Part shown: positions 29,033 to 63,968 of the stretch, piece by piece
Layout: each line of letters opens with the position of its first letter
Position numbering within the stretch: the first letter of the stretch is position 1
Source of the DNA: Takakia lepidozioides
Lineage: Eukaryota > Plantae > Bryophyta
Length of the DNA stretch: 64,000 bases
Direction: 5' to 3'
NCBI GenBank assembly: GCA_030704615.1
Contig: CM060733.1
Span: forward strand, 23,932,001-23,996,000
The notes under the pieces: model-generated
The model's database searches: none
Told to the model about the DNA's origin: nothing
What the model saw: only the letters and a program-made list of their open reading frames with translations
Program-made: the position numbers and the translations under genes

Positions 29033-32000
29033 TCACCAGTAATCCCCACAAGAGCAGACTCCATCATGGAAGTGGTGAAAGCGGTTTGCATCCCGCACAA
29101 TCACCACTCGCCCAACAATCTTTGAGATGAACTTGGTAGCGGTGTGGCAGTCACCACACACCCGAAGGTTCTTGATAATGCGGATAGGCATCCCGGGGGG
29201 TGTGCTGATAAGCCCAAAAGCAATGGCCAGCTTCTCACTGTGGTGGCAGAGAGAAGCTACCTTCTGCTCCTCCTCCACATCATGCAATACAAAGCTAGTG
29301 TCCGGAACGTACCCCGCCTGCTTCATCTGCCCAGATAATCTCTCCAGCTCAGTGTGGATTTCCTCAATATGTGGATGTAACGTGTCTTCTGTAATGAACT
29401 CATGCACCTGGTCGTTCACCTCAATGCAACTGCGCCCTGGCTCCTTTCTGACACCTCTGTCCTGCATCATTTGTCTCACCTTTGCTTTATCGTCCCATCT
29501 TCCAGCAGCAGCGTAGATGTTTGATAGCAGCACATAAGCTCCAGCATGCTGTGGATCCGACTTGAGAATCGATTTTGCAGCACGTTCTGCTAGCTCCACA
29601 TTGCCATGGACTCTGCAGGCACTGAGCAAGGCCCGCCACACTGTAGCATCTGGTTCAATTGGCATTTTGTTCATGAAGTCCTCTGCGTCATCAATTCGCC
29701 CTGCACGGCCAAGAAGATCCACCATGCAGCCAAAATGCTCCACTGTAGGTGTGAGCCCATAGTCTCCATTCATGGAGTGAAAATAGTGTCGGCCTTCATC
29801 CACCAGGCCTGCATGGCTACATGCAGAAAGAAGAGATAGGAAGGTGATTCCGTCCGGAGTCAAGCCTTCCTGTTGCATTTGCTCGTACGTCTGAACAGCC
29901 TCTTCACCATACCCGCACTGGGCATATCCTGCAATCATGGCAGTCCAGGATACCACATTTCGCTTGGCCATTTTGTCAAACACTTGACGGGCATCCTTAG
30001 TGCTCCCACATTTTGCATACATGTCAACAAGTGTAGTCTCCAAAGTAATGTCTGATGTGAGGTAACTTTTGGCAATGTCAGCATGGACCCGGTGACCCCT
30101 GTCCAGGGCTCCTAGGCTGGCACACGCTTTTAGAACACAGATGAATGTGACCATGTCGGGCACTGTCCCTTCTTGTTGCATTTGTTCATAGATTCTGAAA
30201 CCTTCTTCATCATGGCCATGCTGGGTGTATCCAGCAATCATAGCATTCCATGAAGCCACATTTCGTTGAGCCATTTGGTCGAATAAATGACGTGCATCCT
30301 TGAGGCTCCCACATTTGGCATATCCTGTGATCATGGCAGTCCAAGAGACCATATTTCGGTTTTCCATTTTGTCAAACACTTGACGCGCATCATTTAAGCT
30401 CCCACACTTGGCATACATGTCAACAAGCGTGGTCTCCAAACCAATGTCTGAACCACTTCCTCTTTCCAGGATATCAGCATGGATCTGCTTGCCCTTCTCC
30501 AAGGTTCCTAGGCTTGCGCACACATTGAGAATGCAAACGAAAGTAACAACATCAGGCGTAACACCTTCCTGTTGCATTTGCTCATAGATTTTGAGGGCCT
30601 CTTCACCATGTCCATGCATGGAATATCCTGCGATAATGGCTGTCCAAGAGACCACATTCCTTTTCGCCATTTTGTCGAATACTTGACGCGCATCCTTTAT
30701 GCTTCCACATTTGGCATACATGTCAACAAGGGTGTTCTCCAAATTGATATATGAAGGAATTCCAGTTCTGAGGATGTCAGCATGCACCCACTTGCCCTTT
30801 TCCAGGGCTCCAAGGCTGGAGCAAGCATTGACAACAGAAATGAATGTGACCCTGTCAGGCATCACCCTTTGCTGTCGCATTTGCTCATACAGTTTAAAAG
30901 CCTCTTCACCATGCTCATGCTGGGCATATCCTGCAATCATGGCATTCCAGGAGACCACGTCTCGTTTAGCCATTTTGTCAAACACTTGATGGGCATCCTG
31001 TATGCTCCCACATTTGGCATACATGTCCACAAGGGTATTGTCCAAATTAACATACGACCTGATTTCAGTTTTGAGGATGTCACCATGTACCCGCTTGCCC
31101 TCTTCTAGAGCTCCTAGGCGGGCACATGCATTCAGAACGCAGATGAATGTGACCACATTTGGTGCCACCCCTTGCCGTTGCATTTTCTCATAGATTTCAA
31201 GAGCCTCTTTACCATGCCCATGCTCAGCATACCCTGCCAGCATGGCGTTCCATGAGACTACATTCCTTCTGGCCATATTCTTGAACACTTGATGCGCATC
31301 CTTTATGCTCCCACATTTCGCATACATGTCAACAAGGCTAGTCTCCAACATGATGTCAGATACAATTCCAGTCTTGATGATGTCAGCATGGACCTGCTGG
31401 GCTTTTTCTAAGGCTCCTAGCCTAGCACATGCATTGAGAACGCAAGTGAAAGTCACACTGTCAGGCATCACGCCTTCGCCTTGCATTTGCTCATAGATTT
31501 GGAGAGCTTTCTCAGCATGCCCGCACTTACTATATCCAGCAATCATCATACTCCAAGTAAATTTATCTCGTTCAGGCATTTTGTCGAACACTTGGCGTGC
31601 ATCAACCATGCTCCTGCACTTGGCATACATGTTGATAAGGGTGTTGTCAAGAAAGATGCTTGCCTTGAATCCACTTTGGATAATGTGGGCGTGCAACTGC
31701 TTTCCCTCTGCAAGGGCTTTAAAATTGATGCACCCCTGCAAGAAAGAGACGTATGTGTTGGTGTCTGCCTGAATGCCCCCTTGGTTCAAAATCTGCAGGG
31801 CCTCTTTCAGTTGTCCTTCCTTACATAATGATCTCACATCCCCATAATGGCCAGAAGAAGTCTTGTTGACTCCCTTTCTTGTCCATGTTTCAAAGGCAGT
31901 GGTGATCATGGAGGTGCTAACCTTGCCACCAGTTTGGTGTCCATCTAACAATTGGCCATGGTTCAACCCTGCCATCCTGCATGAGTCAGATCTATGTCTC

Positions 32001-33485
32001 TGTGAATGCATATTCATAGAGTACATCTAACATCCCTAAGACTGACTGGAAACAAGGTGACAAAACTCTTACGGTTCATCTAGAATGGGATTTGACTTTA
32101 GTCATCTCAAAACACAACAGTACCTGCTGCATTCTCGACCTGGAGCTGCATGGTGCCCATCAATATTAGAACCACTGCCAGATTGAGTTTGACCTTGCAT
32201 CATGGCAGCTAGCTCTGTCTTCAACCAAGGCGGGTTTGACCGACTCTCAATCCGAAGGACCTCCTTTGTGAACTTATGTCGGAAGTCTGGTGATAGTGAA
32301 TTCCTCTGTGTAAGGCAAGCCAGGAGAATGCCATACCTTCAACCACAGCCCGATAGAGACCACCAAACCTCCCATGCATCATATCAAACACCAGGCCACA
32401 CCTTTGACCAACATTGAATGCTATATTCTGGCTAACAACCTACTCATTGCAGGTATGATATCTAACGTCAGCATCGTCAATAATCTGGGCAACTGAAACC
32501 ATAGAAGGGTCCGTTTCGAAAAAGAAACAAAATCATAAGTTCATAGATAGCCCCACCTTATCAAACCTGTTGTCCCACCACTGTGAAGGATCTGACATGA
32601 ACTCATGCCAAAGCTGTTCTATGTTCATTGATTGGCCTGCAGCCAAATAACATGAAATCTATATGAGCATGTACTCTACTAGAAGTCTTATTGTAGAATG
32701 CTAGAAAAGCTTTCCTCGGATTGATTCTCTCTCTCCCCTCTGCACACCACGGGTGGGTGAGATCTGGCCACAAGGCTACAGAAAGCATGGTCGATCAATC
32801 TACTCTCCCTGTCTGATGCCATCTCCACCCTCAGTTTGACTGCCGATATTATTCACTTCTTGGACCTAAGCCAGCAAGTTTGTGACAAGAGCCACACAAG
32901 ACCGCTACACAACCAGTGAGAGCCAGAATACAAATAAAAAAGGCAACATACATGTTGTGATGTACGTAACCCTGTGCTGTGGGAAATCAGGCACAGGGCT
33001 AAAAGCACCACCTCATTCTCTGGAGCAGTCATGGGGCCCTGCCTTACTAGTCAAGGCGAGGCCCATGTCAGAATGCCCCAGTCCTGCCAGGCTGCAGACA
33101 GATAATCTAAGTACATGCTAGGATATCAAGTCAAAATCCCGCTTTGCAGAGATTAAGGTTGGATTTCCATGTGTGCTGGGACGTGTCAAGGACAGTTTGG
33201 AGCCTGGATGGTTTGACACACACATTAGAGACGCCAAAGTGACAAACTCAGACAAACTAGTTGGATGTCTGTACCTTCTTTCGGTTTCACAGAAAACTTG
33301 GGAGGCACCACAGCCAGCATTCTCAAGGAAATCGGGCACTCCATTGTCAAGGTGGATGCCCCTTCGAGCTCTAGCTGCCCCCTTATTTGGATGCATGAAG
33401 TGAGGCATCCCGCCCGTTGAGGTGAACAACAAGGCACTGCCGTGGATACGGAATGTCCGTACCCATCAGAGCACGCTGCCATCAT
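29033..33485 (-). CDS. PPR-1: PDF(OSB-type)-PLS-PPR-E-DYW protein; 4 exons, 1138 aa; predicted C-to-U organellar editing factor
   Basis: Exons 33485-33275, 32636-32557, 32305-32124 and 31976-29033 are all GT-AG with phases 1, 0, 2 (3417 nt open). P-L-S repeats, E domains, HSEKLA, CGDCH and terminal DYW are intact. The PPR-DYW part is secure; the three upstream exons are a manual model. Confidence 0.88.
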
Positions 33486-33949
33486 CCCTTCGCTTGTGTG
33501 TGCGAGGCAAGGAAAAGAAGCAAATGTGAAATCGGTGGCTCTACTGTTTTGAGTGTCTCTCGAGGGAATGCGTTAAAGAACTGTGCTTCCGTTCTCACAC
33601 GAGGACAAGACTTTTCCTGCAAATTCATTAACTCCGCTGCCCTTTGCAACTACCTCCTGCCTTGAGGACCATCTTGGTCCCAAGATATTATTTACTCGAC
33701 CATGAAGATTGAACCTGATGAGAGGAAAGAGCGGTACGATGTGAGAGAAACGGAGTGGCATCTCATGCTTACTTTCTTCAAGAATCTGCACCGAGTAACA
33801 AAGCAAATGAGCTTAAGTTCTGCGTGACTCCAAGTCTCCCCCCCAAAAAATTTTAAGCTAAATCTTTGGCAGGGGTCTCCTCTGACGCGACATGTGCAAA
33901 ACAAAACAATGAAAATGCTCTTTCTTTCTCTCGAATGCAAGGCACCGCG

Positions 33950-34368
33950 ATGGTGGCAAGGTGCTGCGGCGCTCTCCCCAGCACGCAGGGGGATGCAACA
34001 CCCAAGGCCCTGCGAAGAAGAATGCACTTCACGTCATGCGGAAGATTAAGGGGCGAGGTTGTGGATTTGAAAGGGACATCCACATTGGCAAGGCCAGTGG
34101 TGGCACCTCCCCACCAGCCTTCAGTGAAACTGAAAGAAGGTATAGACGTGCAACTTTTTGCGCCTTGTTTGGGGTCTGTGCGTCAGACCCATGTGGGCTC
34201 CAAATTGTCATGACCCACACCTCATAGTGTTGCTCTCCTTGTGGTATACCCAGTCCACAGCAGGGTCAAAGAAGGTCTGTCAAGCATTGGGAGCAGGACC
34301 GACAGGCTTACCTCCGCCCTCAGCTCTTCACTATTCCTGAAACTTCACTATACGCTATTAATTTTTGC

Positions 34369-34408
<40 letters not shown>

Positions 34409-37400
34409 ATCGTCTCTTTCAGTCGTCTCTTTCGAATTCTCTCAGAAAACTCAGCTATTTTGGTTTTACAGTATACTGTCCGAGATTAAACCCACTGCTG
34501 CAGGTATGAGAAAGAAAGATCATCGTTGTCATAATCATTATTCTAGGCAACTGAAGCAACAGTATAATCATTTCAACCCCAGATGCCAGAATCATTAAGT
34601 AAGAATACAGACAGACTCACCTTATCAAACCTGTTATCCACCACTGCAAAGGATCTGACATGAACTCCTGCCAAAGGTGCTCCATGCCCAATGCTTGGCC
34701 TACAGGCAAATACCGCATAAATATAAGATGTTTAGGAGCTCCAAATGACCACAAGTCTAGCTGGGGATTACTTAGTGGGCTTTCCCCCACTAAGTACTCC
34801 CCAGCAAGACTTATGGTCATTTGGAGCTCCTAAACATCTTATATTTACGCGGTATTTGCCAACAGGCCAAGCATTGGGCATGGAGCACCTTTGGCCAGAG
34901 TTCATGTCAGATCCTTTACAGAAAAATCTCGGACAGTGTACCGTAAAACCAAAATAGCTGAGTGTTCTAAGTTGTTCCTATTTTTGATATGAATCCTGTG
35001 GGGGTGCTTTGGTGGTTGTTGCCTGGTCTGTTGGGGGACAAGGTTGTTCCCTATTATGTGAAAGATGCTGGGGAGCTTTGGTGGTCTGAGCAGGTCTGTG
35101 GTTGATCCAAGGTCGCCAGACTTCAGACATATGTGCACAAAGGAGGTCCTTTGGTCAAATCCCTCTTGGGTGAAAGCAGAGCCAGCTGCCATGGCACAAG
35201 ATCAATCAGGATCTGAGGATGGATCTAGTATCAATGTGCACCATATAACGACAGGCCGCCAATACAGCAGGTATGGTTTTGTGGACAGCAAGTCAACTGT
35301 ATATCTTTAAAGAGAGAGAATCGCTTCAGTGTATTCTCAATGTACAGAGCCTGTGGCAGTTTGTACCCTGTCATTATGTACATCAAAATGCCCGTGGTCG
35401 TGAAGATATATGTGATGTGTTGGGAAGTATCTACAAGTGTCAAGATAAACAATGTCCATATAAATATTAGACTTTCTGACTTGGAGATCTGAGTTGCATA
35501 GGATGACAGAGTCGGAGGGAGCACAATCAGTCATTGGACATCAGCCTGGCGGCAGCAGTAGCACCTCCACCAGAGCCTCTACTTCTGAAAAAGGCCCAAG
35601 AGAGGGAATCAGCAAAAAGTCTTGTGACATTCACAGGGATGTGAGGACACTATGTAAGGAGGGACGACTGAAAGAGGCGATGCATATATTAAAGCAACCA
35701 GGCATGCGGCCAGACTGCAACACTTATGTCTGTCTCTTACAGAGTTGCATCAAGAAGAAAGCCCTAGCAGAGGGAAAGGAGGTGCAAGCCCACATCATCC
35801 AAAGTGGACTCAAACCGAACATAATTCTTAACAACACCCTTATCAACATGTATGCCAAGTGCGGGAGCGTGGTGGATGCATGCCAAGTGTTTGACAAAAT
35901 GTGTCAACGAGATAAGTTTACATGGAGTATGATGATTGCAGGGTGTGCGAAGCATGGACATGCTGAGAAGGCTTTCAAAGTCTACGAACAAATGCAAGCA
36001 GAGGGAGTCATTCCTGACAGGGTGACTGTCACTTGTGTTGTCAATGCATGTGCCAAGCTAGCGGCCCTGGAAATTGGCCAGCGGGTCCATGCTGACACAA
36101 TCAGAAGTGGAATTGCCTCAGACATTACTCTAGAGACCTCCCTCATTGACATGTATGCCAAATGCGGGAGCATGAAGGATGCGCGTCAAATGTTCGACAA
36201 AATGGAAAAACGAAATGTGTTCTCTTGGACTGCCATGATCACAGGATACGCAAAGTGTGGGAGCATGAAGGATGCACGTCAATTGTTCGACAACATGACC
36301 GAAAGAAATGTGGTCTCATGGAACGCCATGATCACAGGATATTCTGAGCATGGATATGCTGAAGATGCTTTCAAAATCTACGAGCAAATGCAATTGGTAG
36401 GGGTTACACCGGACGCTGTCACATTCATCTGTGCTCTCAATGCTTGTGCCAGCCTAGGAGCGCTGGAAAAGGGCAAGCGGGTCCATGCTAATATTCTTGA
36501 AACTGGAATTGGGTCTGACGTTACTTTGGAAACTACCCTTGTTAATATGTATGCCAAATGCGGGAGCCTAAAGGATGCACAGGAGGTGTTTGATAAAATG
36601 GAGAGACGCAATGTGGTCTCTTGGACTGCCATGATTGCAGGATATGCACAATGCGGGAGCCTAAAGGCTGCACGTCATTTGTTTGACAGTATGACTGAAC
36701 GGAATGTGGTCTCATGGAATGCCATTATTTCAGGGTACGCACAGCATGGGCATGGTGAAGAGGCTTTCAAAATCTATGAGCAAATGCAACGAGAAGGGGT
36801 GACGCCTGACCTGGTCACATTCAATTGTGCTCTCAATGCGTGTGCCAGGCTAGGAGCCCTGGAAAAGGGCCGGCGTGTCCATGCTGATATTGTCAAAACT
36901 GGAATTGGGTCTGAGATGACTTTAGAGACTGCCCTTGTTGACATGTATGCGAAATGTGGGAGGATTAAGGATGCACGTGAAGTATTTGACAATATGACCA
37001 AACGAAGCGTCTTCTCCTGGACTGCCATGGTCACAGGGTATGCTAAATGTGGGAGTGTACAAGATGCACGCCAAGTTTTCAACCAAATGGACATACGAGA
37101 CGTTGTCTCATGGAACACCATGATCACAGGATATGCTCAGCATGGGCATGGTGAAGAGGCTTTCAATTTGTACCAGCAAATGCAGCAGGAACGGGTGATA
37201 GCTGACAGGGTAACGTTCACTGGCGTTCTCACTGCATGTGCCACCCTTGGGGCCCTAGAAAAGGGCAAGCGGGTCCATGCCGATATCCTCAAAATGGGAA
37301 TCGTGTTGGACATCAATTTGGAGACCACCCTTGTTGACATGTATGCCAAATCTGGGAGCGTGAGGGATGCACGTCAAGTGTTTGACAATATGCCCAAACA

Positions 37401-38325
37401 AACTGTGGTCTCCTGGACCGCCATGATTGGAGGATATGCCCAGCATGGGCGTGCTGAAGAGGCTCTCACACTCTATGAGCAAATGCGACAGGAAGGCTTC
37501 AAGCCGGACAGTGTCACATTCACCTCTCTTCTCTCTGCATGTAGCCGTGGGGGACTAATGGATGAGGGCCATCACTACTTTGATTCCATGAGGCGAGACC
37601 ATGGCCTCATCCCTACAGTGGAGCATTTTGGCTGCATGGTGGATCTTCTTGGTCGTGCAGGGCAATTGGATGCTGCGAAAGACTTCATCAACGAAATGCC
37701 TATCCAACCAGATGCTATGGTGTGGCGGACCTTTCTTGGTGCCTGCAGAATTCATGGCAAGGTGAAACTAGCAGAAGAGGCTGCAGAACGGCTTCTCGAG
37801 TTGGATCCACCACATCCTGCAGCTTATGTGCTACTGTCAAACATCTATGCTGCTGCTGGCAGGTGGGAGGATAAAGCAAAGGTGACGCAGATGATGGAGG
37901 ACAGATGTATAAGAAAAGAGCTAGGACGCAGCTTCATTGAAGTGAATAACCAGGTGCATAATTTCATTGTAGGAGACGAAATGCATCCACAAATTGAGGA
38001 GATCTATGCTGAGCTGCAGAGATTGTCTGGGCAGATGAAGGAGGCTGGGCACATGCCTGACACACAGTTTGTATTGCATGATGTGGAGGAGCAAGAGCAA
38101 TTTTCTCATTGGCACCACAGTGAGAAGCTGGCAATTGCCTTTGGGCTCATCAGCACGCCCCCTAGAACACCCCTTCGTGTCATCACAAACCGTCGGCTGT
38201 GTGATGACTGCCACATTGCCACCAAGTTCATCTCCAAGATTGTTGAGCGAGAACTTGTTGTCCGGGATGCCAACCACTTTCACCACTTCCAAGTCGGGGT
38301 CTGTTCTTGTGGGGATTATTGGTGA
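33950..38325 (+). CDS. PPR-2: PLS-PPR-E-DYW paralog with a disrupted 5' PDF region
   Basis: The main exon 35502-38325 is open and has HSEKLA, CDDCH and DYW. Exon 33950-34139 is homologous to PPR-1 exon 1. The PDF first-half exon (from 34866) has lost WWDNR..K and its donor. 35065-35270 (SPDFRHMCTKEVLWSNPSWV) splices in phase 2 to 35502. Confidence 0.8.
34371..34403. repeat. (GA)n microsatellite
   Basis: Uninterrupted GA run just left of the palindrome. Confidence 0.95.
34444..34968. repeat. Long fold-back palindrome: core arms 34644-34779 and 34786-34921 (6-nt loop), outer arms 34444-34487 and 34925-34968
   Basis: The 136-bp core arms pair without indels, with about 10 mismatches by hand count. 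The 44-bp outer arms pair across a 156-bp segment (34488-34643) present only on the left. Confidence 0.95.
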
Positions 38326-38926
38326 ACCAAGCCATGCCACTTGAAATGAATATGGCCAGCCACACACAATACAGAATTTTGGAAGACCCTCAGGTGGGCC
38401 ATGATTGTCAGTTAGTTCTGTCTGAAGTACTTAAGTTGAGCATGATAGGTTAGCCACCTATGTGTCAAATGATTGCCAACTATGATACACAACTGCACCT
38501 TTTCTCACTTATGGGTAATTGTGCAGTACTTTATTTCCACTAGGACTCTTGCCCCTTAATAAGCATCAAACACCAAAACAGGTACCAATCGCAGACCTTC
38601 CATTTTAGGTCCATCTTCGCTTCTTGTGAACTGACAAAGTCATTTGACTTAGGATTTCAAAGGCTAATCCCACCCATCCCTCACCAGAAAAGATCTGCTG
38701 AAGTACAAGCCATCAATCCCAAGTGAAAAACAGAAGCAACTAGCCATCAATCTGTAGATTACAAATGTGTTGCCCATGCAAGGTGCCTCCAGAATTCTAT
38801 CCACATACACATTCAATGAAGTGCATGTATCACACCCGCACTTCAGACACCATCCTGATCAAGCTTCCATGAAGACTCACCATGATGCACCATAGAACGA
38901 CCAAACCAGTACTGCCATGTTGATCA

Positions 38927-40622: not shown

Positions 40623-43600
40623 TCACCAGTACTCCCCACAAGAACAAACCCCATCCTGGAAGTGGTGAAACCGGGTGGCATCCCGGACAACAATTGCTCT
40701 GCCAACAATCTTGGAGATGAACTTGGTTGCTGTGTGGCAATCACCACACACACGAAGGTTCTTGATGACACGAAGAGGAGTCCCAAGGGGTGTGCTGATG
40801 AGCCCAAAAGCAATGGCCAGTTTCTCACTGTGGTGGCAAAGAGAATTTTCTTTTTCTTCCTTCTCCAAATCATGCAATACAAAACGTGTGTCAGGCACGT
40901 ACCCAACCTCCTTCATGTGCCTGGACAATCGCTCCAGCTCAGCATGGATTGCCTCAGTTTGTGGATGCAATGTATCTCCCACAATAAACTTATGTATCCG
41001 ATTGTCAACCTCAATGCAGCTGTGCCCTGCCTCCTTTCTGACACCTCTGTCCTTCATCATTGCTCTCACCTTTGCGGTATCATCCCACCTGCCAGCTGCA
41101 GCATAGATGTTTGATAGGAGCACGTAAGTTGGAGCGTCCTGTGGATTCCAATTCAGAATGCTTTTTGCTGCACGTTCTGCTACATCCACATCACCATGAA
41201 CCCTGCAGGCACCAAGCAAGGCCTTCCACACCACAGCACCTGGTTCGATTGACATTTGATTAATGAAGTCCTCTGCCTCATCCAATTGCCCAGAGCGGCC
41301 AAGAAGGTCCACCATGCACCCAAAATGCTCCATTGTAGGAGTGAGACCATAATCACAAATCATGGAATCAAAGTAGTGACGGCCTTCATCCACAAGGCCC
41401 GCATGACTACATGCCGAGAGAAGACATATAAAGGTGACAGCATCCGGCATCAAGCCTTCCTTTCGCATTCGTTCAAACAGTTGCAAGGCTTCCGCACCAC
41501 ACCCATGCTGAGCATACCCTGCAATCATTGTGCTCCATGATACCACATTTCGTTCAGTCATATCATCAAAGACTTGACATGCATCCTTCATGCTCCCACA
41601 CTTAGCATACATATCAACAAGGGTATTCTCCAGATTCAAATATGACTCTATTCCAGCTTTGATGATCTCAGCATGGACCTCTTTGCCCTTTTCCAGGGCT
41701 GCCAGGCTCGTACATGCATTGAGAACGCAAACGAACGTGACTTTGTTGGGCAATACCCCTTGCTCTATCATTTGCTCATAGGTCTCGAGCGCTTCCCTAC
41801 CACACCCTTGCTGAGCATATCCTGCTATCATCGCACTCCATGTGAACACATTTCGTTGAGACATATTGTCAAACACACAGCGTGCATCCTTAACACTCCC
41901 GCATTTTGCATACATGTTGACAAGCACAGTGTCCAGAATGACATCTGGAGCAATGCCAACCTTGCTGATAACAGCATGGAGCTCCCTGCCTTTTTCCAGG
42001 TCTGCCGGGCTAGCACACACATTGAGAACACTAGTAAATGTGACCTTGTCAGGTGTCATCCCTTCCCGTATCATGTGCTCAAAAGTGTGGAAAGCCTCCC
42101 TAACCCAACCATGCTGAGCATATCCTACGATCATAGCGTTCCATGACATCACATTTGGCTTTAAGCCTTTTTGTTGCATCAGTTCAAATAGTTGCAGGGC
42201 CTCCCTAAGACACCCACATCGAGCATATCCTGCGATCATAGCACTCCATGAGATCACATTTCGTTCAGCCATATTGTCAAAAACTTGACGAGCGTCCTTC
42301 ATGCTCCCACATTTGGCATACATATCTGCAAGGGCAGTCTCCAGGACGACATCTGGAGCAATTCCAGCTTTGATAATGTCAGCATGGACCTCCTCGCCCT
42401 TTCCCAGGGCTGCAAGGCTGGCACAAGCCTTGAGCAGGGAAATGAACGTCACCCTATTGGGCAATACCGCTTCCTCTTTCATTTGCTTATAAGTCTCAAA
42501 AGCCTCCCTACCATTCCCATGCTGAGCATATCCTCCGATCATCGCACTCCATGAGACCACATCCCGCTTAGCCATGTTGTCGAACACTTGACGAGCATCC
42601 GTAAGGCTCCCGCATTTGGCATACATGTCCACGAGGGTATTCTCAAGAGTGATATCTGAAACGATTCCGGAATTGACAATGTCAGCATGGACTGCCATGC
42701 CCTTTTCCACGGCTGCAAGGCTGGCACAAGCCTTCAGCACACAGATGAAGGTGACCCTGTTCGGCATCATCCCTGCCTGTCTCATTTGCTCATAGGCCTC
42801 AAAAGCCTCCCTACCACACCCACGCTTGGCATATCCTGCCATCATTATATTCCATGTAGATATATCTCGTTCAGGCATTTTGTCAAACACTCCATATGCA
42901 TCCACCACATTCCCGCACTTGGCATACATGTTGATGAGGGTATTGAGTAGAGAGAGATTTGGGGTGAATCCACTTTGGATAATATGGGCATGCACCTGCT
43001 TTCCCTCTGACAGGCATTTCATCTTGATGCACTCCTGCAAGAGGTAGACATATGTCATGGAGTCTGCCGAAAAACCTTCTTGGTTCAAGAGGTGCACTGC
43101 CTCTTTTAATCTACCTGCCTTAGACAGTGTCCTCACATCCCCACATGTGGCCAAGGAGTTCTTGTGGACTCCCTCTCTTGGTCTTCTCTCAAAAGCAGGG
43201 GTTGCCGTGCAGGTGCCTGATCCAAATGACTCTGCCTGATTCAAGCCTGCCATCCTGCATGAATTAAAAGGATCTTAGTCATCAACTGGACAAGAACAAC
43301 CATGAAATATATCTTAAAGCATGTACATACCTCCAAGAAAAAGATCGCTTCATGAAGACAGGGCCTTGCCACATATTAATCAAGTTTTCAATTCCACATC
43401 ACAGCATAAAGGTGCACAACTTCAACCATTATACAACACAGACACTAGCTGTAAGTCCTTTACACTTTTATATCACTACGAGAACCACTTCTGACGACTG
43501 TCTTCAAGTTTACACGCCGAATAACATCTTCTGCTCCTTGAAATATAGAAATGAGACGCTAACTGTCCCCCCTTGCAAAAATAAAGTAGCAAAACACCCT

Positions 43601-43848
43601 GTGCATCTAACAGAAGATGACAACCCCGAAAGATCGGCATCTGTAAAAGGGCAAGGAGTGTCATACTGCAAGTGTACGGATGATCCCCCTCCACCAGGGC
43701 TTGCTGCATACTTTTGCATAGTTCCTTCCAGCTTATCTGATGGACCATCTGCCCATGCAGGTTTCTTGTGGCTATGAACCCACAGTGCCTCCTTGGCGCT
43801 CTTGTGGCTGAAATCTGGTACGCTGAGACTGACCTGCAGCAGCCACAT
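40623..43848 (-). CDS. PPR-3: PLS-PPR-E-DYW (terminal EYW) protein with an upstream exon carrying the C-terminal half of a PDF motif
   Basis: The main exon 43254-40623 is intact (HSEKLA, CGDCH, CSCGEYW). The upstream exon 43848 (or acceptor 43833)-43598 encodes VPDFSHKSAKEALWVHSHKKPAWADG. It joins in phase 2 at the same CAG|G ATG GCA acceptor as PPR-1, although the donor GG|GTGTTT is weak. Confidence 0.85.
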
Positions 43849-44239: not shown

Positions 44240-44456
44240 TTTTTTCTTTTTCTTTTTTTTTTGAAAGGGAAACACCTGGGAGCGACAGCTCACAAATCAG
44301 GCCCCTTGATAGAGAGAGGAGAAAATAACCTCTCAGTAACCTCGCCCGTAAGGTTTAGGGGGAGAAGAGTGTACCGCACCCGTCAAGTAGCAGGATTTGA
44401 CCCCAGGGTCATCCGGATGGCACTCAGTGCACTTTTACCAACTGAGCTACTGACTG
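44240..44456 (-). mobile_element. tRNA-derived SINE-like element
   Basis: The minus strand reads TAGCTCAGTTGGTAA (A-box) ... GGGGTCAAATCC (B-box-like), then a ~120-nt body and an A-rich tail (T-tract 44240-44262). No TSD was found. Confidence 0.65.
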
Positions 44457-45349
44457 TTGGTGACAAAGTCACTGAGTGAGACACACTCTCTGTGTCCCGT
44501 AATGGCCTTCTGGTTGTAATTGAAGCAGAGAGACCGAAAGATCAGTTTATTTGGCTTTACAAGACTGACTGAGACACTCTATTTTGGAATTTAACAGTTG
44601 AGTGAATCCACCATTGCCTCGCTAATGAGGAATAGACAATAGACGTTTGGCACCAGGTGATCTCCACAGATAACTCCACCTCATCAAAGAGAAGGGCATC
44701 ATGCTTAGAGATTCCAGTGGTTCAACCTCAGCAGATGTGCCCATTGCAGCCGTGTACAAACTCAACTTTTGTTTGCATTTAAGATCCAAAGGGAGAGTTA
44801 GCAGCTGAACAAACACATTCTAGCTGTTCTTTCACTGTGAATTACCATCCGACCACATGCAGAGCCAGATGGGATTATTTGCACACATTGCAGGCAAACA
44901 TTCATTGGTATGAATATCATACTCTGCAACACACGCACGAATTGCGTATTTGAGTTTATCCCAAAAGGAACAGCCCATTTGAGCGGTTACACTCCCTAGC
45001 TCCACTACCGAAACTTGTTAATGGCATCCATATCCACTGTTGAGTTTACGCTATCAATGTTGCTCGGATGAAAAGGCCCCTGCTGTAGAAATCCAATCCA
45101 GCTTTTATGGTCATGCAGATTGGTATATTCATCAGAGACATCTGCTGTATACGGCCATTGAGATGACAGAGGACACTGACACAGGTGGCCGTGGGCTGGA
45201 CCACCACCAGATGCCTGTTCAGCACAACCAACACGGAAATGGGCTGTGCTAGGAATGTTGGCGCTTCATAGCACCTTTGCACATAGATCATTGCTTCATT
45301 GCAATCTGCTTCAGGAAAGACGGCGGTTGCATAAAACATGCCGATCCAA

Positions 45350-51600: not shown

Positions 51601-54600
51601 ATCCTCCCGTTATCCATTTGCGACATCAATTTCAGCAGCTACCGCCTGATAGTGAGAAATCCCTGTGGAAGGCACGCATGTTGCTGCTGCAGTTTGGTTT
51701 AGGTGACCCTCCTTCCTCTGACAGCTTCCACCAGCAACCACAGTATGAGTACCAGCACCCTCCCTCTCAAGACCAACAGCAGCAGCCTCTATCTCAGTTT
51801 ATGCCACCCATGGGCATGGAGGGGCATGATACCAGCGGCTACGGTGGGCCCTCACCTTCATGTGGTTGGCTTTCTGTGGGAGGACCTGGTACACCTTCTC
51901 CTTCAGCTGCCATAGGGTCAGAACTGGGTGGTGGCCCTCAACTGGACCCTCAGGTATGCACTGTCTGGTTTGAACAGTGCTCACTATCATGTTGTTGTGC
52001 TGTAAAGTTTATCTTTTTCCTACTTTGTGTCGAGAATTCAGTCTGGTAGTGAAGTTCTTTGTGTTGAATGTGTTGTGATGGTTTGATGTAACTAATGAAT
52101 CTTTCTTTCCAATTTTGTGGAAACATGAAGGTCTAGACCAATTAGGTGAATTTTGGTGACCTGACAAAGCAGGATCCAGAAATCCTATGCTGTCTGGCTT
52201 TGGTCACATAGAAATCACAGTAGAGGTCACGGCACCTAGTGCAGTATACATGGGGGTCTTCATTTTAGCCTGACCTTCTCTGTGTGGTTGGTATGGGCGT
52301 GTCAGTTTGAGTTCCAGCACTATCCTCCAGAGCCCCAGCAATTCGAGGGAGGTACCATTACCCACAGGCCAGACTTCCCGTCGTGGGGAGCTACTCCAGG
52401 TGGATTCTTCGGCTTATCTAGAAGCCCGAATATGGGGATGGATATCCCTACGTTCATCGAGAATGGTAATGGCCATATGGGTGGGCCGGAGCGTGCTAAG
52501 AAGGTAATTGTCTTTTGATGATTGCTTTGCAGGTTGCCTTCAGCAGGCAATATCCTTTGGGGTACCTTCTGGTCGACAGATCCAGGGTGAGGGGTTTGAC
52601 AAGACTGGGTCATTGAGTGCAGGCATCAGTGCCCTCTTGGCTGAAGGACGAATTATTGAAAAAGAGAAATGTTGCAGCGGTTGGCTCAGCACCCATGTCC
52701 AAAGACGATGATTCTGGCAATGGAAGTGGTTTTGAAGCTTCCACCGGCACTAAACTTGGGTTCTTGGATACCACAAGGAGCGAAGTCTCCCGAAAGAGCA
52801 ACGTGGAGGATGAGGATGATGAGGTCAGCATTTTCTTTTTCCATTTTGAGGGCAGTCACAGCTAGATGCACACATAATCATGTCTCTCATTGTGGAATAT
52901 GTAAGAACTACAGCATTGGAATTAGGGTGGCAACTGATTAAGGCAGGTTTGAAGGTAGATTTTTTCCTCTCTCCCTGTCATCTTCAACCAGCAGGAAATT
53001 GAGATTGTGAAATCATACCGGTACCTGGGTCTGGTTATCCACTCCCCCAAATTCCACTTTGCAGCCACTGCCCTGGACAGATTGACTAAAGGTAAGGCGG
53101 CCTCCGTCCGCCTTCAGGCCAAATGCAAGCAAATACATCTGCCTCACCCCCCAACCAAAAAGTGGCTGTTTGACACCGTCGTCAGCCCTGCTACCATCTA
53201 TGGTTGTGAGTTCTGGGCACCTGGTGTCCCTGTCTCCTGGTGGGAAAAGAATCTGGAACCATTGCAGTCATCTTTTCTCCAAGCAATGCTTGGCGCCAGA
53301 AGCACAACTCCATCTCATATCCTAGGTGCAGAGTTCGCATGTGTACCATTGCAAACCGAGGCCCCTCTTCCGGCTTACAATCTTTCTCCATAGATTACAG
53401 GCCCTTCCACCCAAGGGGCTCGTGGCAAGGGCCCTCGCAACATCTATGAGGCTCAAAGCTGCAGGTTTCAGGATCTCCTGGTATGCTCGAGTGGACAGTT
53501 TATTTCAACGCAACGGACTCTCTACTGCTTCCCTATTACCAATGAATCCAGACGAGGTGGACATCACTTCCAGACATGACCGCAACAGACTCATTAGGAG
53601 AGAGCTTATGGAATTACATGTCAAGAGAGCTTGGAAGCTACCCAATCTCACGACAAAGCTCCACTTCTATCGAGAGACATTCTTGGTGCTCCGAGATGAT
53701 AGAATCTTGAGGCCAAATTACCTTTCAGCATCCTTATCTCCTTCCCTCCTGAGGGCATTGGGGCGGTTCAGGGTGGGTTCCCACAACCTACGGATAGAGA
53801 CTGGCAGATGGGAAAACCTGCAACGGGAGGACCGCCCATGTCCAGCTTGCATAGGGCGCAGCCAGGAAATTGAAACTGAAAAACACTTCTTCTACTGCCC
53901 TCTATACTACGAGATCCGTGGGAGATTCCACTGTTTATTCAGTGGAACCCAATCTCTCACTGAAGTCTTCCACTATGAGGATCAAAAATGCTTGGCAGCC
54001 TACCTGCACGAGGCCTTCACCCTTAGACAATCACTAGAACATTAGCTCTTATTCTTGGGTTCTGATTTTGTTCCTCTCTCATGTTTTCTTCCATTTTGTC
54101 CCATAAGCTCTATGAGCTTTCCCCGGACGTTATAAAGCACCATTTCATCTCATTTCCCTGAACTCTCCCTCCGGCCTGGGTTGTGGGTAATGGATTATTG
54201 GGCACTGCTGTTGATGTAGGATCACGTGGAGGGAGCAAAGAGGGCAGCCATCAATCAAGAGATAAAGCATGTGCTCACAGAAGTGCTGTTGAAGGTATAA
54301 TGTTGCAGGTTGTCTGCCCCTACTTGTGAATGGGAGAAACTGCCTGGGAGGTATTACTTGACTGGTGGCTTTGAGCAATGGGCCTTGGAAGTTCAATCAT
54401 GATGTCTTTCCTTGTGGTATGTTGTGGGCGATGGATAGCACAGGTGACTGATGACTTGTTTGACGAGATTGCACAAGAAGTTATGGAGGAGGATGGGCAA
54501 CATGTGTTAGAAGGTCTGGCACCTGCCTTACCATGACTCACGAAGCAAGTCTGCAAGACCAGTATGCAGACTGACACTGGGGATACAAAAGAGACTATGA

Positions 54601-56413
54601 GTTCCATGGATGCCTGAAGCCAAGGATACAACTCAAACAACAAAGAACCAAAGAAAGTGGGAGAGACAGGCCCAGGATAGGGGAGTGTTGTCTTCAGCCC
54701 ATTCCTGCTGTGGCTTTCAGCCATACGCCTCGTGCTTGGTAGGGCAGGAGTAGTCTATAGTTGGTATTCCTACCGAAACTTGGTAGCGAAGACATTGAAT
54801 CACAGCTGTAAGTATTGTTGGTTGCTGTAACTTCTTGGTTCTAGGAACTGTTGTATCTCTGATATAAAGCATGTGTACGGACTGCTATCAACAGTATTTT
54901 TGTTTGGATTGTGCTAGAGACAGTGACAGTATCAGCTTCCACCCATGTGACAGAAGCGGGTTTGACTCTGGGCAAGGCATCATCTCTCTCTCTTTCTCCT
55001 GCTCCCCCACTACCTGCCAGATTGCTAGTAGACCCTGGTGTCAAGCAGAGCCAGGCTGCCAGTGATGGTGATGGTGAAACCTGGAGCTCAGGTGTTCCTG
55101 CTGGTAATCTACTGGGGCTTGCAAACTATGCCTCAGATGATGAGGATGGGGATAGCTGCAACAAGCAATTTTTTGAAAGTGCTCAACATGAGGGGGAGAA
55201 ATGTGAGAAGGAGACGAGGAAACCTTATGACCTTAGGGATGTATGGGTTGAGAGGGCTCAGATGGCAGAAAGGATAATAACAAGAGAGGAGGGAGATGCA
55301 AAGAAGGAAGGTGATAAAGACACAGATGGAGAGAAAGAGGGGAGAAATTGGAAACAACTAAAAGGGAAGAAACGCTCGAATGAGGAAGGCAACAGTAATG
55401 ATCTTGATTCAGGGAGCCCAAGGTGGGCTAGGCATGTAGGGATAGAGAAAGCAGGTAGCGAACCTGGTCCAATAGATGGTTCAGGTTTAGTTCAACCAGA
55501 GGTGATTGACATAGAACACCAAAGTGGTGTGATTCATAGGGAGCCGAAAGGAGAGGGTCTAAATCATGTGGGCAGAAAGTATGTGGATGCAAGCCCTTCA
55601 GAGTTGCACAGTGGGGTGGAAGCCTCTGAAAAGAGCAAGGCAACTCATAGTAATGTCTTTAATGATCTGGGTGTAAAAAAGGAGACGGAAGTGGAACTGA
55701 AGCATGAGCAATCATGTAGGAACAGCAAAGGAGTAGTTACTTCAGGGGGTTTCAGTAAAAGAAAAATAGACAGCAGGGATGTAAATGCTCAGAAGAAAGA
55801 TCAGGATAAGATAGAGGGGGTCAATATACATAGGGATCATCATGGACCTCAGAGGAGGAGGGGCAAGAGAGGTGACCGTGATGACAAGAAGGACAAGAAG
55901 CGGGATAGGGCCAAGGACTGGGATGTGGTACTTGAGAGGACACATGAAAAAGTGCTCGCCAAGGAAGATTCTGAATGGGGCATAGAGGGAGAGAACAAGA
56001 GAGGGGAGCGAGAGCTTGACAAAGATCACCGGGGATTGGGATCTGTCAAGCATGGAGGGGGAAGCAAGTGCAAGGAGGGGAGGGGTTCTATGAGAAGGCT
56101 GCGTTCACCAACATTGAGTAGTCGAAGCCATAGCAGGAGTGCCTCGTCTGGCAGTTGTACCAGCAGTGCCAGTCCCCGGAAGAATCAAAGCCCAAGGCGA
56201 AGGTAAGAGCATGTGTCCTTCTAGTTAAGAACCAAGCTATCCATCCCTCTTTTAGCCCTTTTGTGAATGATACCCTTTTTTCTCAGTAGTTAGTTGAAAA
56301 CCAGCAGCTTGTAAGTTTGTTTCACTTGGTTTGTGCAGGAAACAGCAATTTGGAAAATCCATCCGTCCGTCCATCCCCAGTGAGTCTCGAGTCCCAATGA
56401 GATCCAGACCAAG
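48652..56413 (+). CDS. PNISR/SFRS18-like Arg/Ser-rich nuclear protein (multi-exon; some 5' junctions and the 3' end unresolved)
   Basis: Motifs EEDWAAKARAW (about 50640), VPSWLKDELLKK (52623-52823), AINQEIKHVLTEVLLK|VTDDLFDEIA (54220-54294, 54444-54513), LLGLANYASDDED and a K/R/D/S-rich tail (54918-56202). Other exons: 48652-48894, ~50580-51043, 51703-51953, 52306-52503 and 56339-56413. Confidence 0.75.
53007..54152 (+). mobile_element. 5'-truncated, frameshifted LINE (RTE/RTEX-like) in an intron of the PNISR-like gene
   Basis: End of the RT domain (SYRYLG...YGCEFW), a frameshift near 53365, and C-terminal RFRVGSHNLRIETGRW...RPCPAC...ETEKHFFYCPLY. It ends in a CATTT-like tail rather than poly(A). 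The clade assignment is inference. Confidence 0.85.
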
Positions 56414-59400: not shown

Positions 59401-59589
59401 ATTGCAATGATTGGCTGACTTCCACTGATGCAGGGTAGACCCCACTACCATTTCCTGTGGATATGCCACAGGAAATGCCCTCAACAGTACATGATGGTCA
59501 ATATTCTCAGGAAATGGTGGACGAACTGATTAGCTAAGCAGGTCAATGAGTGAAGCAAGATACTCACACCATTCCAAACCAACATCGTT

Positions 59590-62500
59590 TCACCAGTAAT
59601 CTCCACAAGAACAAATCCCATCTTCAAAGTGGTGAAAGCGGTTAGCGTCCCGTACAACAATTGCTCGGCCAACAATCTTTGAGATGAACTTGGTGGAGGT
59701 GTGGCAGTCACCACACACCCGAAGATTCTTGATGAGACGGAGAGGTGTACTAGGGGCTGTGCTGATCAGCCCAAATCCAATGGCCAGCTTCTCACTGTGA
59801 TGGCAGAGAGAAAATTCCTTTTGCTCCTCTCCCACATCATGCAATACAAAACGCGTGTCAGGCACATACCCCGCCTCCTTCATCTGCCCAGACAATCTTC
59901 TCAGCTCAGCATGGATTTCCTTAATTTTGGGATGCCATTTGTCATCTACAACAAAGGTGTGCACCCTGTTGCCAACCTCAATACAGCAGCGACCTGGCTC
60001 CTTTCTAACCCCTCTGAACTTCATCATTTTCCTCACCTTTGCACTGTCGTCCCACCTGCCAGCTGCGGCATAGATGTTTGACAGCAACACATAAGCCGCG
60101 GCATCCTGTTCATCCCACTTGAGAATAGATGTTGCCGCACGTTCAGCCATCTCCACATTGCCATGGATTCTGCAGCCACCAAGCAAGGCTTTCCACACCT
60201 CATTATCTGGTTTGATTGGCATTTTATTAATAAGCTCCTCTGCCTCATCCAATCGCCCTGCACGTCCAAGAAGGTCCACCATGCAGCCAAAGTGCTTTAC
60301 TGTCGGAGTAACAACATGATCTTGACTCAGGGAATCAAAGTAGCGTCTTCCTTCATCCACTAGGCCAACGTGGCTGCATGCAGAGAGAACACATATAAAG
60401 GTGATACTGTCCAACTTGAAGCCTTCCCTCTGCATTCTTTCAAATAGTTGCAGGGCCTCCATATGACAACCATGCTGGGCATATCCCGCAATCATCGCGT
60501 TCCAGGACACCACATCTCGTTCAGTCATATTGTCAAACGCTCCCTTTGCATCCTTGATGCACCCACATTTGGCATACATGTCCACCAGGGCAGTGTTCAG
60601 AATGACATTTGGTACAATACCAGCTTTGATGATGTCACCATGAACCTCTTTGCCCTTTTCCAGGGCTGCCAGGCTCGCACACACATTGCAAATGCAGACG
60701 AACGTGATGTGATTTGGCTTCACCCCTTCCCGCATCATTTGCTCATATGTCTCCAAAGCCTCCATCCCACACCCATGCTGCGCATATCCTGCAATCATGG
60801 CACTCCAAGACACCACATTTCGTTCAGCCATATTGTCGAACACTCCCTTTGCATCCTCAATGCACCCACATTTGGCATACATATCCACCAGGGCACTGTT
60901 CAGAATGACATCTGGTACAATTCCAGCTTTTACAATGTCACCATGAACCTCTCTGCCCTTTTCCAGTGCTGCCAGGCTCGCACATGCTTTGCAAACACCA
61001 ACAAACGTGATGTGGTCAGGCTTCACCCCTTCCCACATCATTTGCTCGTAGGTATCTATAGCCTCCATACCGCGCCCATGCTGTGCATATCCTGCGATCA
61101 TGGCACTCCAAGACACCACATCTCGTTCGGCCATATGGTCAAACACTCCCTTTGCATCTTCAATGCTCCCACATTTGGCATACATGTCCACCAGGGAATT
61201 CTTCAGGATGACATCTGGTACAATTCCAGCTTTGATGATGTCACCATGAACCTCTTTGCCCTTTTCCAGGGCTGCCAGTCGCGCACACGCATTGCAAACA
61301 CAAACAAAAGTAACCCGGTCTGGCTTCACCCCTTCCCGTATCATTTGCTCATAGGTCTCCAAAGCCTCTGCCCCACACCCATGCTGTGCATATCCTGCAA
61401 TCATTGCACTCCAGGACACCACATCACGTTCAGCCATATGGTCGAACACTCCCTTTGCATCCTCAATCCTCCCACATTTGGCATACATGTTCATCAGGGC
61501 AGTGTTCAGAACTACATTTGGTAAAATTCCAGCTTTGATAATGTCACCATGGACCTCTTTGCCCTTTTCCAGGGCTGCCAGGCTCGCACACGCATTGCAA
61601 ATGCAAACAAATGTGACCCGGTCAGGCTTCACCCCTTCACGTATCATTTGCTCATATGTCTCCAAAGCATTCCTACCACACCCATGCTTGGTAAATCCTG
61701 CCATCATTGTATTCCATGTGATCAAACCTCGTTCAGGCATTCTGTTGAAGACTTGGTGTGCATCCGCGATGCTCCCGCACTTCACATACATGTTGACAAG
61801 GGTGTTGTGTAAGAAAACATTTGGCTTGAATCCACTTTGGATAATGTGAGCATGCACCTGCTTCCCAGATTCCAAGCCTTTCATCTTGATGCACTTATGC
61901 AAGAGACAGACATAAGTATCTGAATCTGCTGAAATGCCTCCTTGGTTTAAAGTCTGTAGAGCCTCTTTCAGTTGCCCTGCCTCACATAGCATCCTCACAT
62001 GACCAGAAGTGCCAGAAGAGAAATTGTGGACTCCCGCTCTTGGTCCTGTTTCAGAAGCTGTGCTCATGGCCGAGGTGCCTGATTTTATCAACTGTGCCGC
62101 CACTGCTGCTGCTTCCAGTTGACCATCTACCCATGCAGGTTTCTTGTAGCAATTGATCCACAGGGAATCATAGGTACTTTTGTGCTTGAAATCCGGCCCT
62201 CTTGCATGAATCTGGACCCACACTCTATCCCTGATACTTCGGCTATCCCTGGCTCTGCACAAATCATCTATAGATCCTCGCCTTGCTGATTGCAGCTGAC
62301 AAAGACAGCCTAAATTTGTTCTACCACACACCCTGACCCTACTTATCATACACGAGTTTCCGATGCTGAAGTGCTCCCAAGACATTAAGAAGGTGCTAGG
62401 AAGAGAGAGGAGGACAGTTTCCAACAAAGCTTTGTATTGCATCTTGTTGTGTGCTTCTCTCTGGAATCTAACAGGCATTCACCTTTTTGCCTTGGTTGTC

Positions 62501-63968
62501 CCACCATTAACTGGGGTCTGAATCCAATGCTTCTCCTCGTCTCTGTTATCTGTTTCTTGATACTTTCCGGCTGCCACATTGGCAGTAACATGTCAAAGTC
62601 ACTCCAAACCACCGTAGATCAACCCAATCATTTGCAGAATTCGACATGAAAATTAGGGACAATTCTGATAAGAGGGTAAAACAGGCTGAAATGTGCTGAA
62701 GAAGTGCCCTCACCACATTGTCCTTGACCTTGTGTCTTGAAAGCAGCTAGTTTTTCTTCCGCCCATGAAGGATTCAACCGACCATCAACCCAAAAGGACC
62801 TCTCTTGTGTGCTGCTTGTGCCTGTAGTCAGGTGAACTCGGATTGGTCTGTGAGAACCACCACTGTGCAGCTGAGCAGCCATAGATTTAACCTCCGCCTC
62901 CTAAGACCAAGCTGACCTTCCCAAGTACCTCATAAACACCACGAAAAATACCAAATCATGCTACGAACAGGAAGAGCCCACATTTGCAGGAATTCTTCAG
63001 ATCATACATGAAGAAAGCCACACCTTGCCATTGCGGCTGTCACACCATTGTGAAGGACATATAAAAAACTCATGCCAGCTCTGCTCCATGCTCCACAGTA
63101 GACCTTCATGCCGGAGAATTCGATAGCATCAACATTTTTGGCAATTGTTTTCTACAGACGAGCTTTCAACAACATTCATGCAAGTCACTTTGGGCTCCAT
63201 TGGACTCTACACAATTGGACACAGAAGAATATGTCGAAACTTACACAGATGCTAAACCACCTTAGTCTGGAGTTTTTGGTGAAAACGACCAGGGAGCAGC
63301 CATAGTCTCAACCCTCCCAAGTACCTCGCAAACTCCAGGGAAAAGACCTTGCGCATCCTACCTTTCATGCCCTGCCCAGGAAGAACAACCGCCGCTATGG
63401 ACAGTAATACCCAGTTTTTGCAGAGCAAAGCGAGATTCTGACTTCACTCAACAACTAGGAGTGCAATCCAATCCACACAACATGATCATACCAGAGTTTA
63501 GTCGAACTCTGTCAGACTCTTCACATCCTACATGAAGAAAGCTCACCTTGCCATTGCTACTGTCCCACCATTGTGAAGAATCTTTAAAGAACTCTTGCCA
63601 GCACTGTTCCATCCTCCAGCGTTGACCTACGCGCCAGATATACCAATTATCGGCCTTGAGATCCCGTGCGCTTTCTTGCTTCTTTGCCCAGAGTACATTC
63701 ATTTCTGCGGAATTGCGCAAAACACAATTCCGAACCTGGATCCCACGGCGCATACATACAACACAGCGACCCCAAAAATGGAAACCGCCAAGTGTTTCGT
63801 GTTCTCACCTAATTTGAATGGCACCCTTGAAGGCGCCATTGCCACCATATGCAAATCACTCCGTCCACTTCGCATTGCCCAGAGAGGGATGCCGGCCCGT
63901 CTCCAGAACGCGGGAAGATGCTGAATGCAAATTAGGCCACGCTTTGACGGCCCATGAGCATATTCCAA
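59590..63968 (-). CDS. PPR-4: PLS-PPR-E-DYW protein with multiple upstream PDF exons; start probably at or beyond the window edge
   Basis: The main exon 62211-59590 (874 codons) begins IHARGPDFKHKSTYDSLWINCYKKPAWV and ends HSEKLA...CGDCH...DYW. Upstream exons: A (donor at 63809), B 63626-63547, B' 63103-63024, C 62847-62714 (frameshifted) and D 62570-62483 (deletion plus stop). Confidence 0.85.

Follow-up and report, generated by a model that had tools for sequence, protein, structure and literature searches.

Four PLS-class PPR-E-DYW genes of Takakia lepidozioides accompanied by OSB-homologous PDF-module exons, predicted complete in one gene and damaged in the others

The OSB proteins of plants (OSB1-4 in Arabidopsis; Zaegel et al. 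2006, summarised in PMC6963530 and PMC4166229) combine an SSB-like OB-fold domain with C-terminal copies of the PDF motif, a module of about 50-60 residues that, in AtOSB1, is reported to be sufficient for binding single-stranded DNA (ssDNA) (PMC6963530, PMC4166229). The PLS-class PPR-E-DYW proteins, as exemplified by Physcomitrium PPR56 and PPR65 (PMC10482289, PMC9459714), consist of a PPR array, E1 and E2 motifs and a DYW domain with HxE and CxxCH motifs, and are encoded in one large exon. Few organelle proteins of plants have been studied as much as the PPR-DYW factors, which also serve as programmable RNA editors. The accessory domains given in review for Physcomitrium PPR proteins are RRM, LAGLIDADG, SMR, NYN, CBS and SAP, with no PDF among them, and in the searchable literature, which leaves subscription-only papers out of reach, we found no paper that brings the PDF motif or OSB together with DYW. 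Here we describe a stretch of 64,000 nucleotides from the moss Takakia lepidozioides (contig CM060733.1, positions 23,932,001 to 23,996,000; hereafter the window) in which four PLS-class PPR-E-DYW genes, PPR-1 to PPR-4, are accompanied by exons of the PDF module. These genes have the architecture of the Physcomitrium proteins and add PDF exons upstream of it. They have in common with the OSB proteins the module itself (a helix, W-W-D-N-R, a 13-residue spacing, P-D-F-K-H-K, L-W and a P-x-W-V helix), whereas they encode no SSB-like OB-fold domain and place their PDFs not C-terminal to an SSB domain but N-terminal to the PPR array.

The open reading frames (ORFs) and PPR-E-DYW exons of the four genes, the exons being supported by Pfam, motifs and an acceptor check, are as follows.
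29033-32026, minus strand: PPR-1 ORF, PLS-class PPR-E-DYW, complete; single PPR-E-DYW exon at 29033..31976, phase-2 entry (AG, then G, then ATG)
35494-38325, plus strand: PPR-2 ORF, PLS-class PPR-E-DYW, complete; PPR-E-DYW exon at 35502..38325, phase-2 entry
40623-43253, minus strand: PPR-3 ORF, PLS-class PPR-E-DYW, complete; PPR-E-DYW exon at 40623..43254, phase-2 entry, C-terminus EYW
59590-62478, minus strand: PPR-4 ORF, PLS-class PPR-E-DYW, complete

In all four ORFs, Pfam identified tandem PLS PPR motifs followed by E1/E2 motifs (PPR families down to E 1e-135, E motif at about 1e-19), together with the DYW deaminase profile PF14432, aligned over nearly the whole of its 93 positions (93/93 in PPR-1). 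The HSE and C-x-D-C-H motifs are kept throughout, and the terminus reads DYW in three of the proteins and EYW in PPR-3. We infer that the four genes encode PLS-class organellar C-to-U RNA-editing factors, the PPR-DYW part being a predicted site-specific cytidine deaminase and both targeting and editing activity being predicted. Pairwise identity among the ORFs is 61-68%, the closest pairs being PPR-3/PPR-4 (68.2%) and PPR-1/PPR-2 (67.7%), the latter arranged head to head. Between paralogues, the ratio of non-synonymous to synonymous substitution (dN/dS) of the PPR-DYW bodies is 0.25-0.31 at a dS of about 0.7-0.9, and the genes are therefore old duplicates under purifying selection. In addition, the paralogues retain homologous introns, alongside which alignable intron patches persist, and the cluster therefore grew by DNA-level duplication and not by retroposition. 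This is in contrast to the emphasis of a survey of PPR expansion in hornworts, mosses and lycophytes, which found mainly dispersed duplication tied to retroposition and makes no mention of OSB or PDF (PMC13386178).

The PDF module in this cluster is divided into a first half, containing W-W-D-N-R, and a second half, containing the P-D-F core and the helix that follows it. A regular expression for the second-half core, applied to all six frames of the window, gave five matches, at 32290(-), 35116(+), 43818(-), 62832(-) and 62196(-), against a chance expectation of about 0.07 (a rough estimate from residue frequencies); each of the five precedes one of the four PPR-DYW ORFs or stands at its 5' end, on the strand of that ORF. 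A hidden Markov model (HMM) built from 150 distinct public full PDF modules, and run with filters off against the six-frame translation of the whole 64 kb, found matches confined to the neighbourhoods of the same four ORFs. Furthermore, tblastn with the PPR-1 first half revealed six related pieces, namely the PPR-1 exon itself, two at PPR-2 and three at PPR-4, a single inverted copy at PPR-2 being the exception in strand. A word-index search limited to the PPR-4 PDF stretch returned four candidates, none of which scored; as exact 5-mers are not preserved in so diverged a stretch, this does not amount to absence. No SSB-like sequence was found in the window, either by tblastn with four OSB N-terminal regions (nothing at E<0.08) or as a Pfam SSB match in the ORFs. 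Exons were searched individually.

In PPR-1, three features were located upstream of the PPR exon.
32804..32822, minus strand: candidate start exon, ATG and phase-1 GT donor; read by eye, uncertain, with no homology support
32557..32636, minus strand: PDF first-half exon, 80 nt, phase 1 to 0, W-W-D-N-R part; 24.3 bits against the PDF-module HMM
32124..32305, minus strand: PDF second-half exon, 182 nt, phase 0 to 2, PDF core and N-P-P-W helix; 29.9 bits against the PDF-module HMM

As judged from predicted splicing, this is the only plainly complete module of the cluster: its two halves have open frames, no splice site is missing, and W-W-D-N-R stands 13 residues from P-D-F. The second half has Arg at the nearly invariant Trp of the L-W pair.

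PPR-4, by comparison, shows the remains of three repeats (R1 to R3).
63809..63875, minus strand: candidate start exon, ATG, 22 codons and 1 nt, GTGAGA donor, phase 1
63547..63626, minus strand: R1 first-half exon, 80 nt, phase 1 to 0, open; the Arg of D-N-R is Ser
63251..63280, minus strand: R1 second-half relic, P-D followed by a stop, 1-nt deletion relative to R2; read by eye
63024..63103, minus strand: R2 first-half exon, 80 nt, phase 1 to 0, open frame
62714..62847, minus strand: R2 second half, P-D-Y core and N-P-S-W helix; frameshift and TGA stop at 62787-62785
62483..62570, minus strand: R3 first-half relic of 88 nt, out of frame, containing indels as well as a TAA stop (62509-62507)
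59590..62211, minus strand: R3 second half and PPR-E-DYW, K-K-P-A-W variant, continuous with the PPR ORF with no intron; 32.1 bits against the PDF-module HMM

Each of the three repeats is thus damaged in one half. The phase-0 acceptor of R3 is intact at 62212/62211, five codons before P-D-F, and splicing of the R1 or R2 first half straight to it would generate an in-frame chimeric module with canonical spacing; it is only through such a junction of a first half with the last second half, skipping four dead exons, that PPR-4 could yield a module in frame. Over 112 nt, flanks included, the first halves of R1 and R2 share 83% identity, which makes them of later date than the duplications of the genes. 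PPR-1, -2 and -3 and the lycophyte Diphasiastrum have a last intron that is absent from PPR-4 and from a moss-like metagenome contig (L001, described below), for which loss is a more likely explanation than gain. A Pfam match of PPR-4 to Transpos_assoc (PF13963; residues 183-220, window 61820-61930; 43.8 bits against a curated cut-off of 27.7) was rejected as spurious, as it coincides with a normal pair of PPR helices, away from the PDF. PPR-3 has a weaker match to the same model, which looks like a false positive of this model on PPR proteins.

PPR-2 and PPR-3 each possess half a module. At PPR-2 the first-half exon has been drawn into a hairpin.
34441..34971, no strand assigned: hairpin from the first-half exon and its flanks, inner arms 34644-34779 / 34786-34921, outer arms 47 nt
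34621..34699, minus strand: inverted first-half copy, 79 nt, frameshifted by a 1-nt deletion, donor kept
34866..34921, plus strand: sense first-half remnant, acceptor intact, cut after 18 codons, W-W-D-N-R part missing
35098..35270, plus strand: PDF second half, open frame, phase-2 donor; 18.9 bits against the PDF-module HMM
43667..43833, minus strand: PPR-3 PDF second-half exon of the K-K-P-A-W variant, phase 0 to 2, with its acceptor intact; 23.1 bits against the PDF-module HMM

The inner arms of the hairpin, of 136 nt each, are 93% complementary and are separated by a 6-nt loop, and the antisense arm retains the 3' part of the exon, with the donor, that was lost from the sense arm. Compared with PPR-1, PPR-2 lacks about 38 nt, and with them the ancestral acceptor of its second half; the AG that comes next lies in phase 2, and the two halves therefore have no in-frame join. 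Translation from an in-frame ATG at 35065 could yield a protein containing half a module. A (GA)n microsatellite (34368-34405) lies directly upstream of the hairpin. For PPR-3, the PDF-module HMM detected no first half between the second half and the YGGT gene 1.5 kb upstream; an in-frame ATG is found at 43848. Upstream of PPR-3 there is also a tRNA-like stretch (44390-44460, minus strand), possibly the head of a short interspersed nuclear element, followed by an A-rich run; it was recognised by neither ARAGORN nor Rfam.

These data confirm what an earlier sequence-only reading of the window had observed, and support in part the interpretation that it gave. PDF second halves do precede every array; the 80-nt, phase 1-to-0 first-half exons that it placed at 32636-32557, 63626-63547 and 63103-63024 have their AG acceptors and GT donors; and the AG|G ATG phase-2 acceptor that it took to be shared is found in PPR-1 (31976), PPR-2 (35502) and PPR-3 (43254). 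To its list of pieces we add the third first-half relic and the decayed R1 second half of PPR-4 and the two first-half copies at PPR-2. The statement that all four genes carry PDF modules holds only if relics are counted: by sequence, a complete module in frame with the PPR-DYW exon is predicted in PPR-1, would be available to PPR-4 only through exon skipping, and is not found in PPR-2 and PPR-3, where half-modules are left. The idea that the module is being kept or lost copy by copy agrees well with this series of one complete module, one rescuable by exon skipping and two halves. As for the two proposed PDF subtypes, N-P-x-W and K-K-P-A-W (then D-G) are real variants; both belong to a single kind of module, being two forms of its C-terminal helix, and this helix is present in OSBs too.

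Pfam contains no model of the PDF motif and the PDF exons gave no match to it, so we built a profile of our own, from the four open second-half exons of the window only, and searched it against 1.84 billion representative proteins. This retrieved 373 proteins at E<=1e-3 and 52 at E<=1e-10; among the matches listed, 89 proteins were of at least 250 residues, and these contained a Pfam SSB domain in 39 cases and PPR in 9. Matches named by their sources included "protein OSB1" (Populus), "protein OSB3" (Canna, Chenopodium, Lupinus and Amborella) and "organellar single-stranded DNA binding protein 3" (Striga). The OSB1 and OSB3 matches had E values of about 1e-23 to 1e-10, and a profile made in the reverse direction matched the window exons. 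The retrieval of both OSB1 and OSB3 by the second-half profile therefore establishes homology to the OSB PDF motif. In line with this, W-W-D-N-R begins 13 residues before P-D-F in the public proteins, a spacing equal to that given by the PPR-1 exon pair when read side by side, and the segment that follows the core (x-P-x-W-V, then a helix) belongs to the module in OSBs also. In a PDF-PPR transcript of a different organism, which has three modules, each of them shows the K-P-[AS]-W-V-D variant. For a two-module OSB fragment, AlphaFold returned a mean predicted local distance difference test score (pLDDT) of 83, with module cores above 90, and a predicted fold of a helix, three short strands and a helix; Foldseek found no relative of this model in the PDB at E<=0.001, and the best VIA Z, of 4.3, involved helical hairpins only. 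The module occurs in more architectures than OSB and PPR: some public proteins have 8-12 tandem PDF modules (P0123, P0124, P0128 and P0134), and one profile match combines PDF with a kinesin motor domain.

The combination of PDF with PPR extends beyond this cluster. Among the 120 best public homologues of PPR-1, the nearest are proteins of Diphasiastrum complanatum (52-54% identity), and 14 of the 120, mostly annotated Diphasiastrum proteins, possess one to three N-terminal PDF modules. Moreover, a 4.7-kb contig assembled from a sequencing run, which was among the top matches of the second-half profile, contains an ORF of 1371 residues with a short presequence, three PDF modules and then PPRs; the ORF is contiguous, and the contig is therefore transcript-like. 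The Diphasiastrum proteins, annotated as hypothetical (among them O6H91_01G051500 and O6H91_10G061300), have the window's arrangement of one to three N-terminal PDFs followed by PPR-E(-DYW), with the 80-nt exon, the two intron positions and the phases all equal to those of the window and a PPR body 52-54% identical; they differ in coming from a lycophyte, and most of the window copies have damaged modules. A metagenome scan with the second-half alignment gave 53 pattern matches, none of which was confirmed.

The exon plans of three of these genes can be compared directly.
PPR-1: first half of 80 nt, phase 1 to 0, followed by a 251-nt intron; second half of 182 nt, phase 0 to 2, followed by a 147-nt intron; PPR exon in phase 2
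Diphasiastrum O6H91_01G051500 (L006): first half of 80 nt, beginning cag|GC as in PPR-1; second half of 146 nt, phase 0 to 2; PPR exon after ag|G, phase 2
Moss-like metagenome contig (L001): first half of 80 nt, followed by a 156-nt intron; second half continuous with the PPR ORF; no separate PPR exon

The window, the Diphasiastrum gene and the metagenome contig have in common a first-half exon of 80 nt, from phase 1 to phase 0, and a phase-0 intron placed directly behind the Lys next to W-W-D-N-R. The Diphasiastrum gene has an additional, degenerate repeat upstream that ends in phase 1, from which it follows that each repeat corresponds to a symmetric pair of exons (1-0-1). The split also reaches the OSB genes: in the liverwort Riccia fluitans, an OSB gene with an SSB domain and one PDF (L007) has its PDF split at the same residue in phase 0, with a first-half exon entered in phase 1 after cag|GC and 107 nt long. 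In OSB genes the PDFs are located at the 3' end, after the SSB, on the last exon in poplar and on the last two in Riccia.

We consider it probable that the four genes are DNA-level duplicates of a PLS-class PPR-E-DYW gene with OSB-homologous, exon-shuffled PDF modules, and that these modules are eroding in the cluster. The ancestral gene would have begun with a short start exon ending in phase 1, followed by at least one PDF module, each composed of an 80-nt first half (phase 1 to 0) and a second half, with second-half phases of 0 to 1 between repeats and 0 to 2 for the last, and would have ended with a single large exon, entered in phase 2, for the whole PPR-E-DYW part. The pair of exons into which the PDF is split may be ancestral in land plants and would have moved with its intron onto a PPR-DYW gene, most likely through exon shuffling, before the split between the lycophyte lineage and that of mosses. 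As the PDF-splitting intron is common to OSB and window genes, this points to the shuffling of a symmetric (phase 1-0-1) exon pair and not to a fusion of 5' ends. The presence of an ATG behind the phase-2 acceptor in three paralogues fits a PPR exon that was once a complete intronless gene. In a tree of 116 second-half modules, the PPR/SSB labels need 3 changes, compared with about 30 when labels are shuffled, and this clustering of PPR-attached PDFs fits few origins.

Most of the evolutionary proposals of the sequence-only reading agree with this account. A PDF-PPR-DYW family is borne out by the 14 homologues and the transcript-type contig, and the expansion by DNA-level duplication that it suggested follows from the retained introns. 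The shared intron architecture is not only real but also ancient, given the Diphasiastrum, metagenome and Riccia genes. An ancestor with at least two PDF repeats is plausible, PPR-4 having both variants in series and the relatives one to three repeats. The proposed source in the 5' region of an OSB-like gene does not fit, because the PDFs sit at the 3' end of OSB genes, and the window is devoid of SSB-like sequence.

Since the duplications, the PPR-DYW bodies would have stayed under purifying selection while the PDF part eroded, and PPR-2 and PPR-3, with their half-modules, would probably be started at the downstream ATGs. With constrained bodies beside eroding modules, the cluster shows that an editing-factor gene of this subfamily can be maintained without the module, which is therefore dispensable here. 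As to its function in PPR-DYW proteins, we infer that an intact PDF, N-terminal to the PPR tract and hence on the 5' side of the bound RNA, would add sequence-unspecific affinity for single-stranded nucleic acid, or could tether the factor to nucleoid DNA.

Several observations weigh against the duplication of a gene with shuffled PDF modules as set out above. The Populus OSB1-like gene carries both of its PDFs on one exon, with no intron in them, and it is conceivable that the shared PDF-splitting intron was gained in parallel. Only 40 columns underlie the module tree, and its PPR/SSB labels are confounded with taxonomy. In addition, the Trp-to-Arg change in PPR-1, together with a relaxed dN/dS of the PDF exons (about 0.65, on very few sites), suggests that even the PPR-1 module may be decaying. 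It could be argued that all PDF exons in the cluster, PPR-1 included, are non-coding relics, and that the products are plain PPR-DYW proteins starting at the ATG after the phase-2 acceptor or, in PPR-4, at its counterpart. An ATG does stand directly behind the acceptor in PPR-1, -2 and -3 and at the matching place in PPR-4, three of the four genes have damaged modules, the PPR-1 substitution affects a nearly invariant position, and the PDF exons have a higher dN/dS than the bodies; between paralogues this ratio is 0.3-0.65 for the PDF exons, on 9-37 synonymous sites only, too few for a verdict, and the constraint on the module rests on its conservation across lineages, not on dN/dS. However, both PPR-1 exons are open, with the right phases, four splice sites and exactly the 13-residue spacing, the family profile gives its first and second halves 24 and 30 bits, and PPR-4 retains two open 80-nt exons with intact splice sites, so that we regard relics throughout as unlikely.

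At the other extreme, all four genes might still produce PDF-PPR-DYW fusion proteins, seeing that the second halves are open in every gene and that an in-frame exon-skipping route exists in PPR-4. This is very improbable, being largely refuted already by the sequence itself: PPR-3 has no first half upstream as far as the next gene, and PPR-2 has a truncated sense first half and a second half whose acceptor is deleted, leaving no in-frame join. Hardly credible, finally, is the notion that the PDF pieces are separate OSB-like genes or pseudogenes, or a mobile element, adjoining the PPR genes by chance, since the window has no SSB-like sequence, the pieces are confined to the 5' side of PPR ORFs, with phases that match and, save for the inverted PPR-2 copy, on the same strand, and both the annotated Diphasiastrum models and the contiguous transcript ORF join PDF to PPR.

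Beyond the explanation that we favour, namely duplicates of a PPR-E-DYW gene whose shuffled PDF modules are eroding, we put forward a bolder proposal, tentatively and with more doubt than belief: PDF-PPR-DYW proteins might form an ancient class of editing factors, so far undescribed, that belongs to seed-free plants and in which an OSB-derived module, shuffled together with its intron, tethers the enzyme to the ssDNA or nascent RNA of the organelle, thereby coupling editing to transcription or to the nucleoid, and is shed in clusters where it is unneeded. A homologue of an ssDNA-binding motif at the N terminus of many PPR-DYW proteins of seed-free plants would constitute a new accessory part of the editing machinery. 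The conserved exon plan, with its 80-nt exon, symmetric phases and an intron common to a liverwort OSB gene, offers a concrete route of exon shuffling, and the four paralogues represent a natural series from complete to half-lost modules with deaminase bodies intact.

Elsewhere in the window, an ORF of 431 residues (54911-56206, plus strand) lies in a region of strong positive GC skew and has no Pfam match; the ORFs at 53326-54045, 50581-51087 and 51528-52049 are likewise free of Pfam matches and, together with the first, may be a repeat element. The neighbours of the cluster are ordinary nuclear plant genes, with minus-strand exons at 12649-15269, 18474-19358 and 45350-45946 that encode, respectively, 2-oxoglutarate dehydrogenase E1 (E1_dh, 2-oxogl_dehyd_N), a PMR5/TBL-type protein and a YGGT-family protein.

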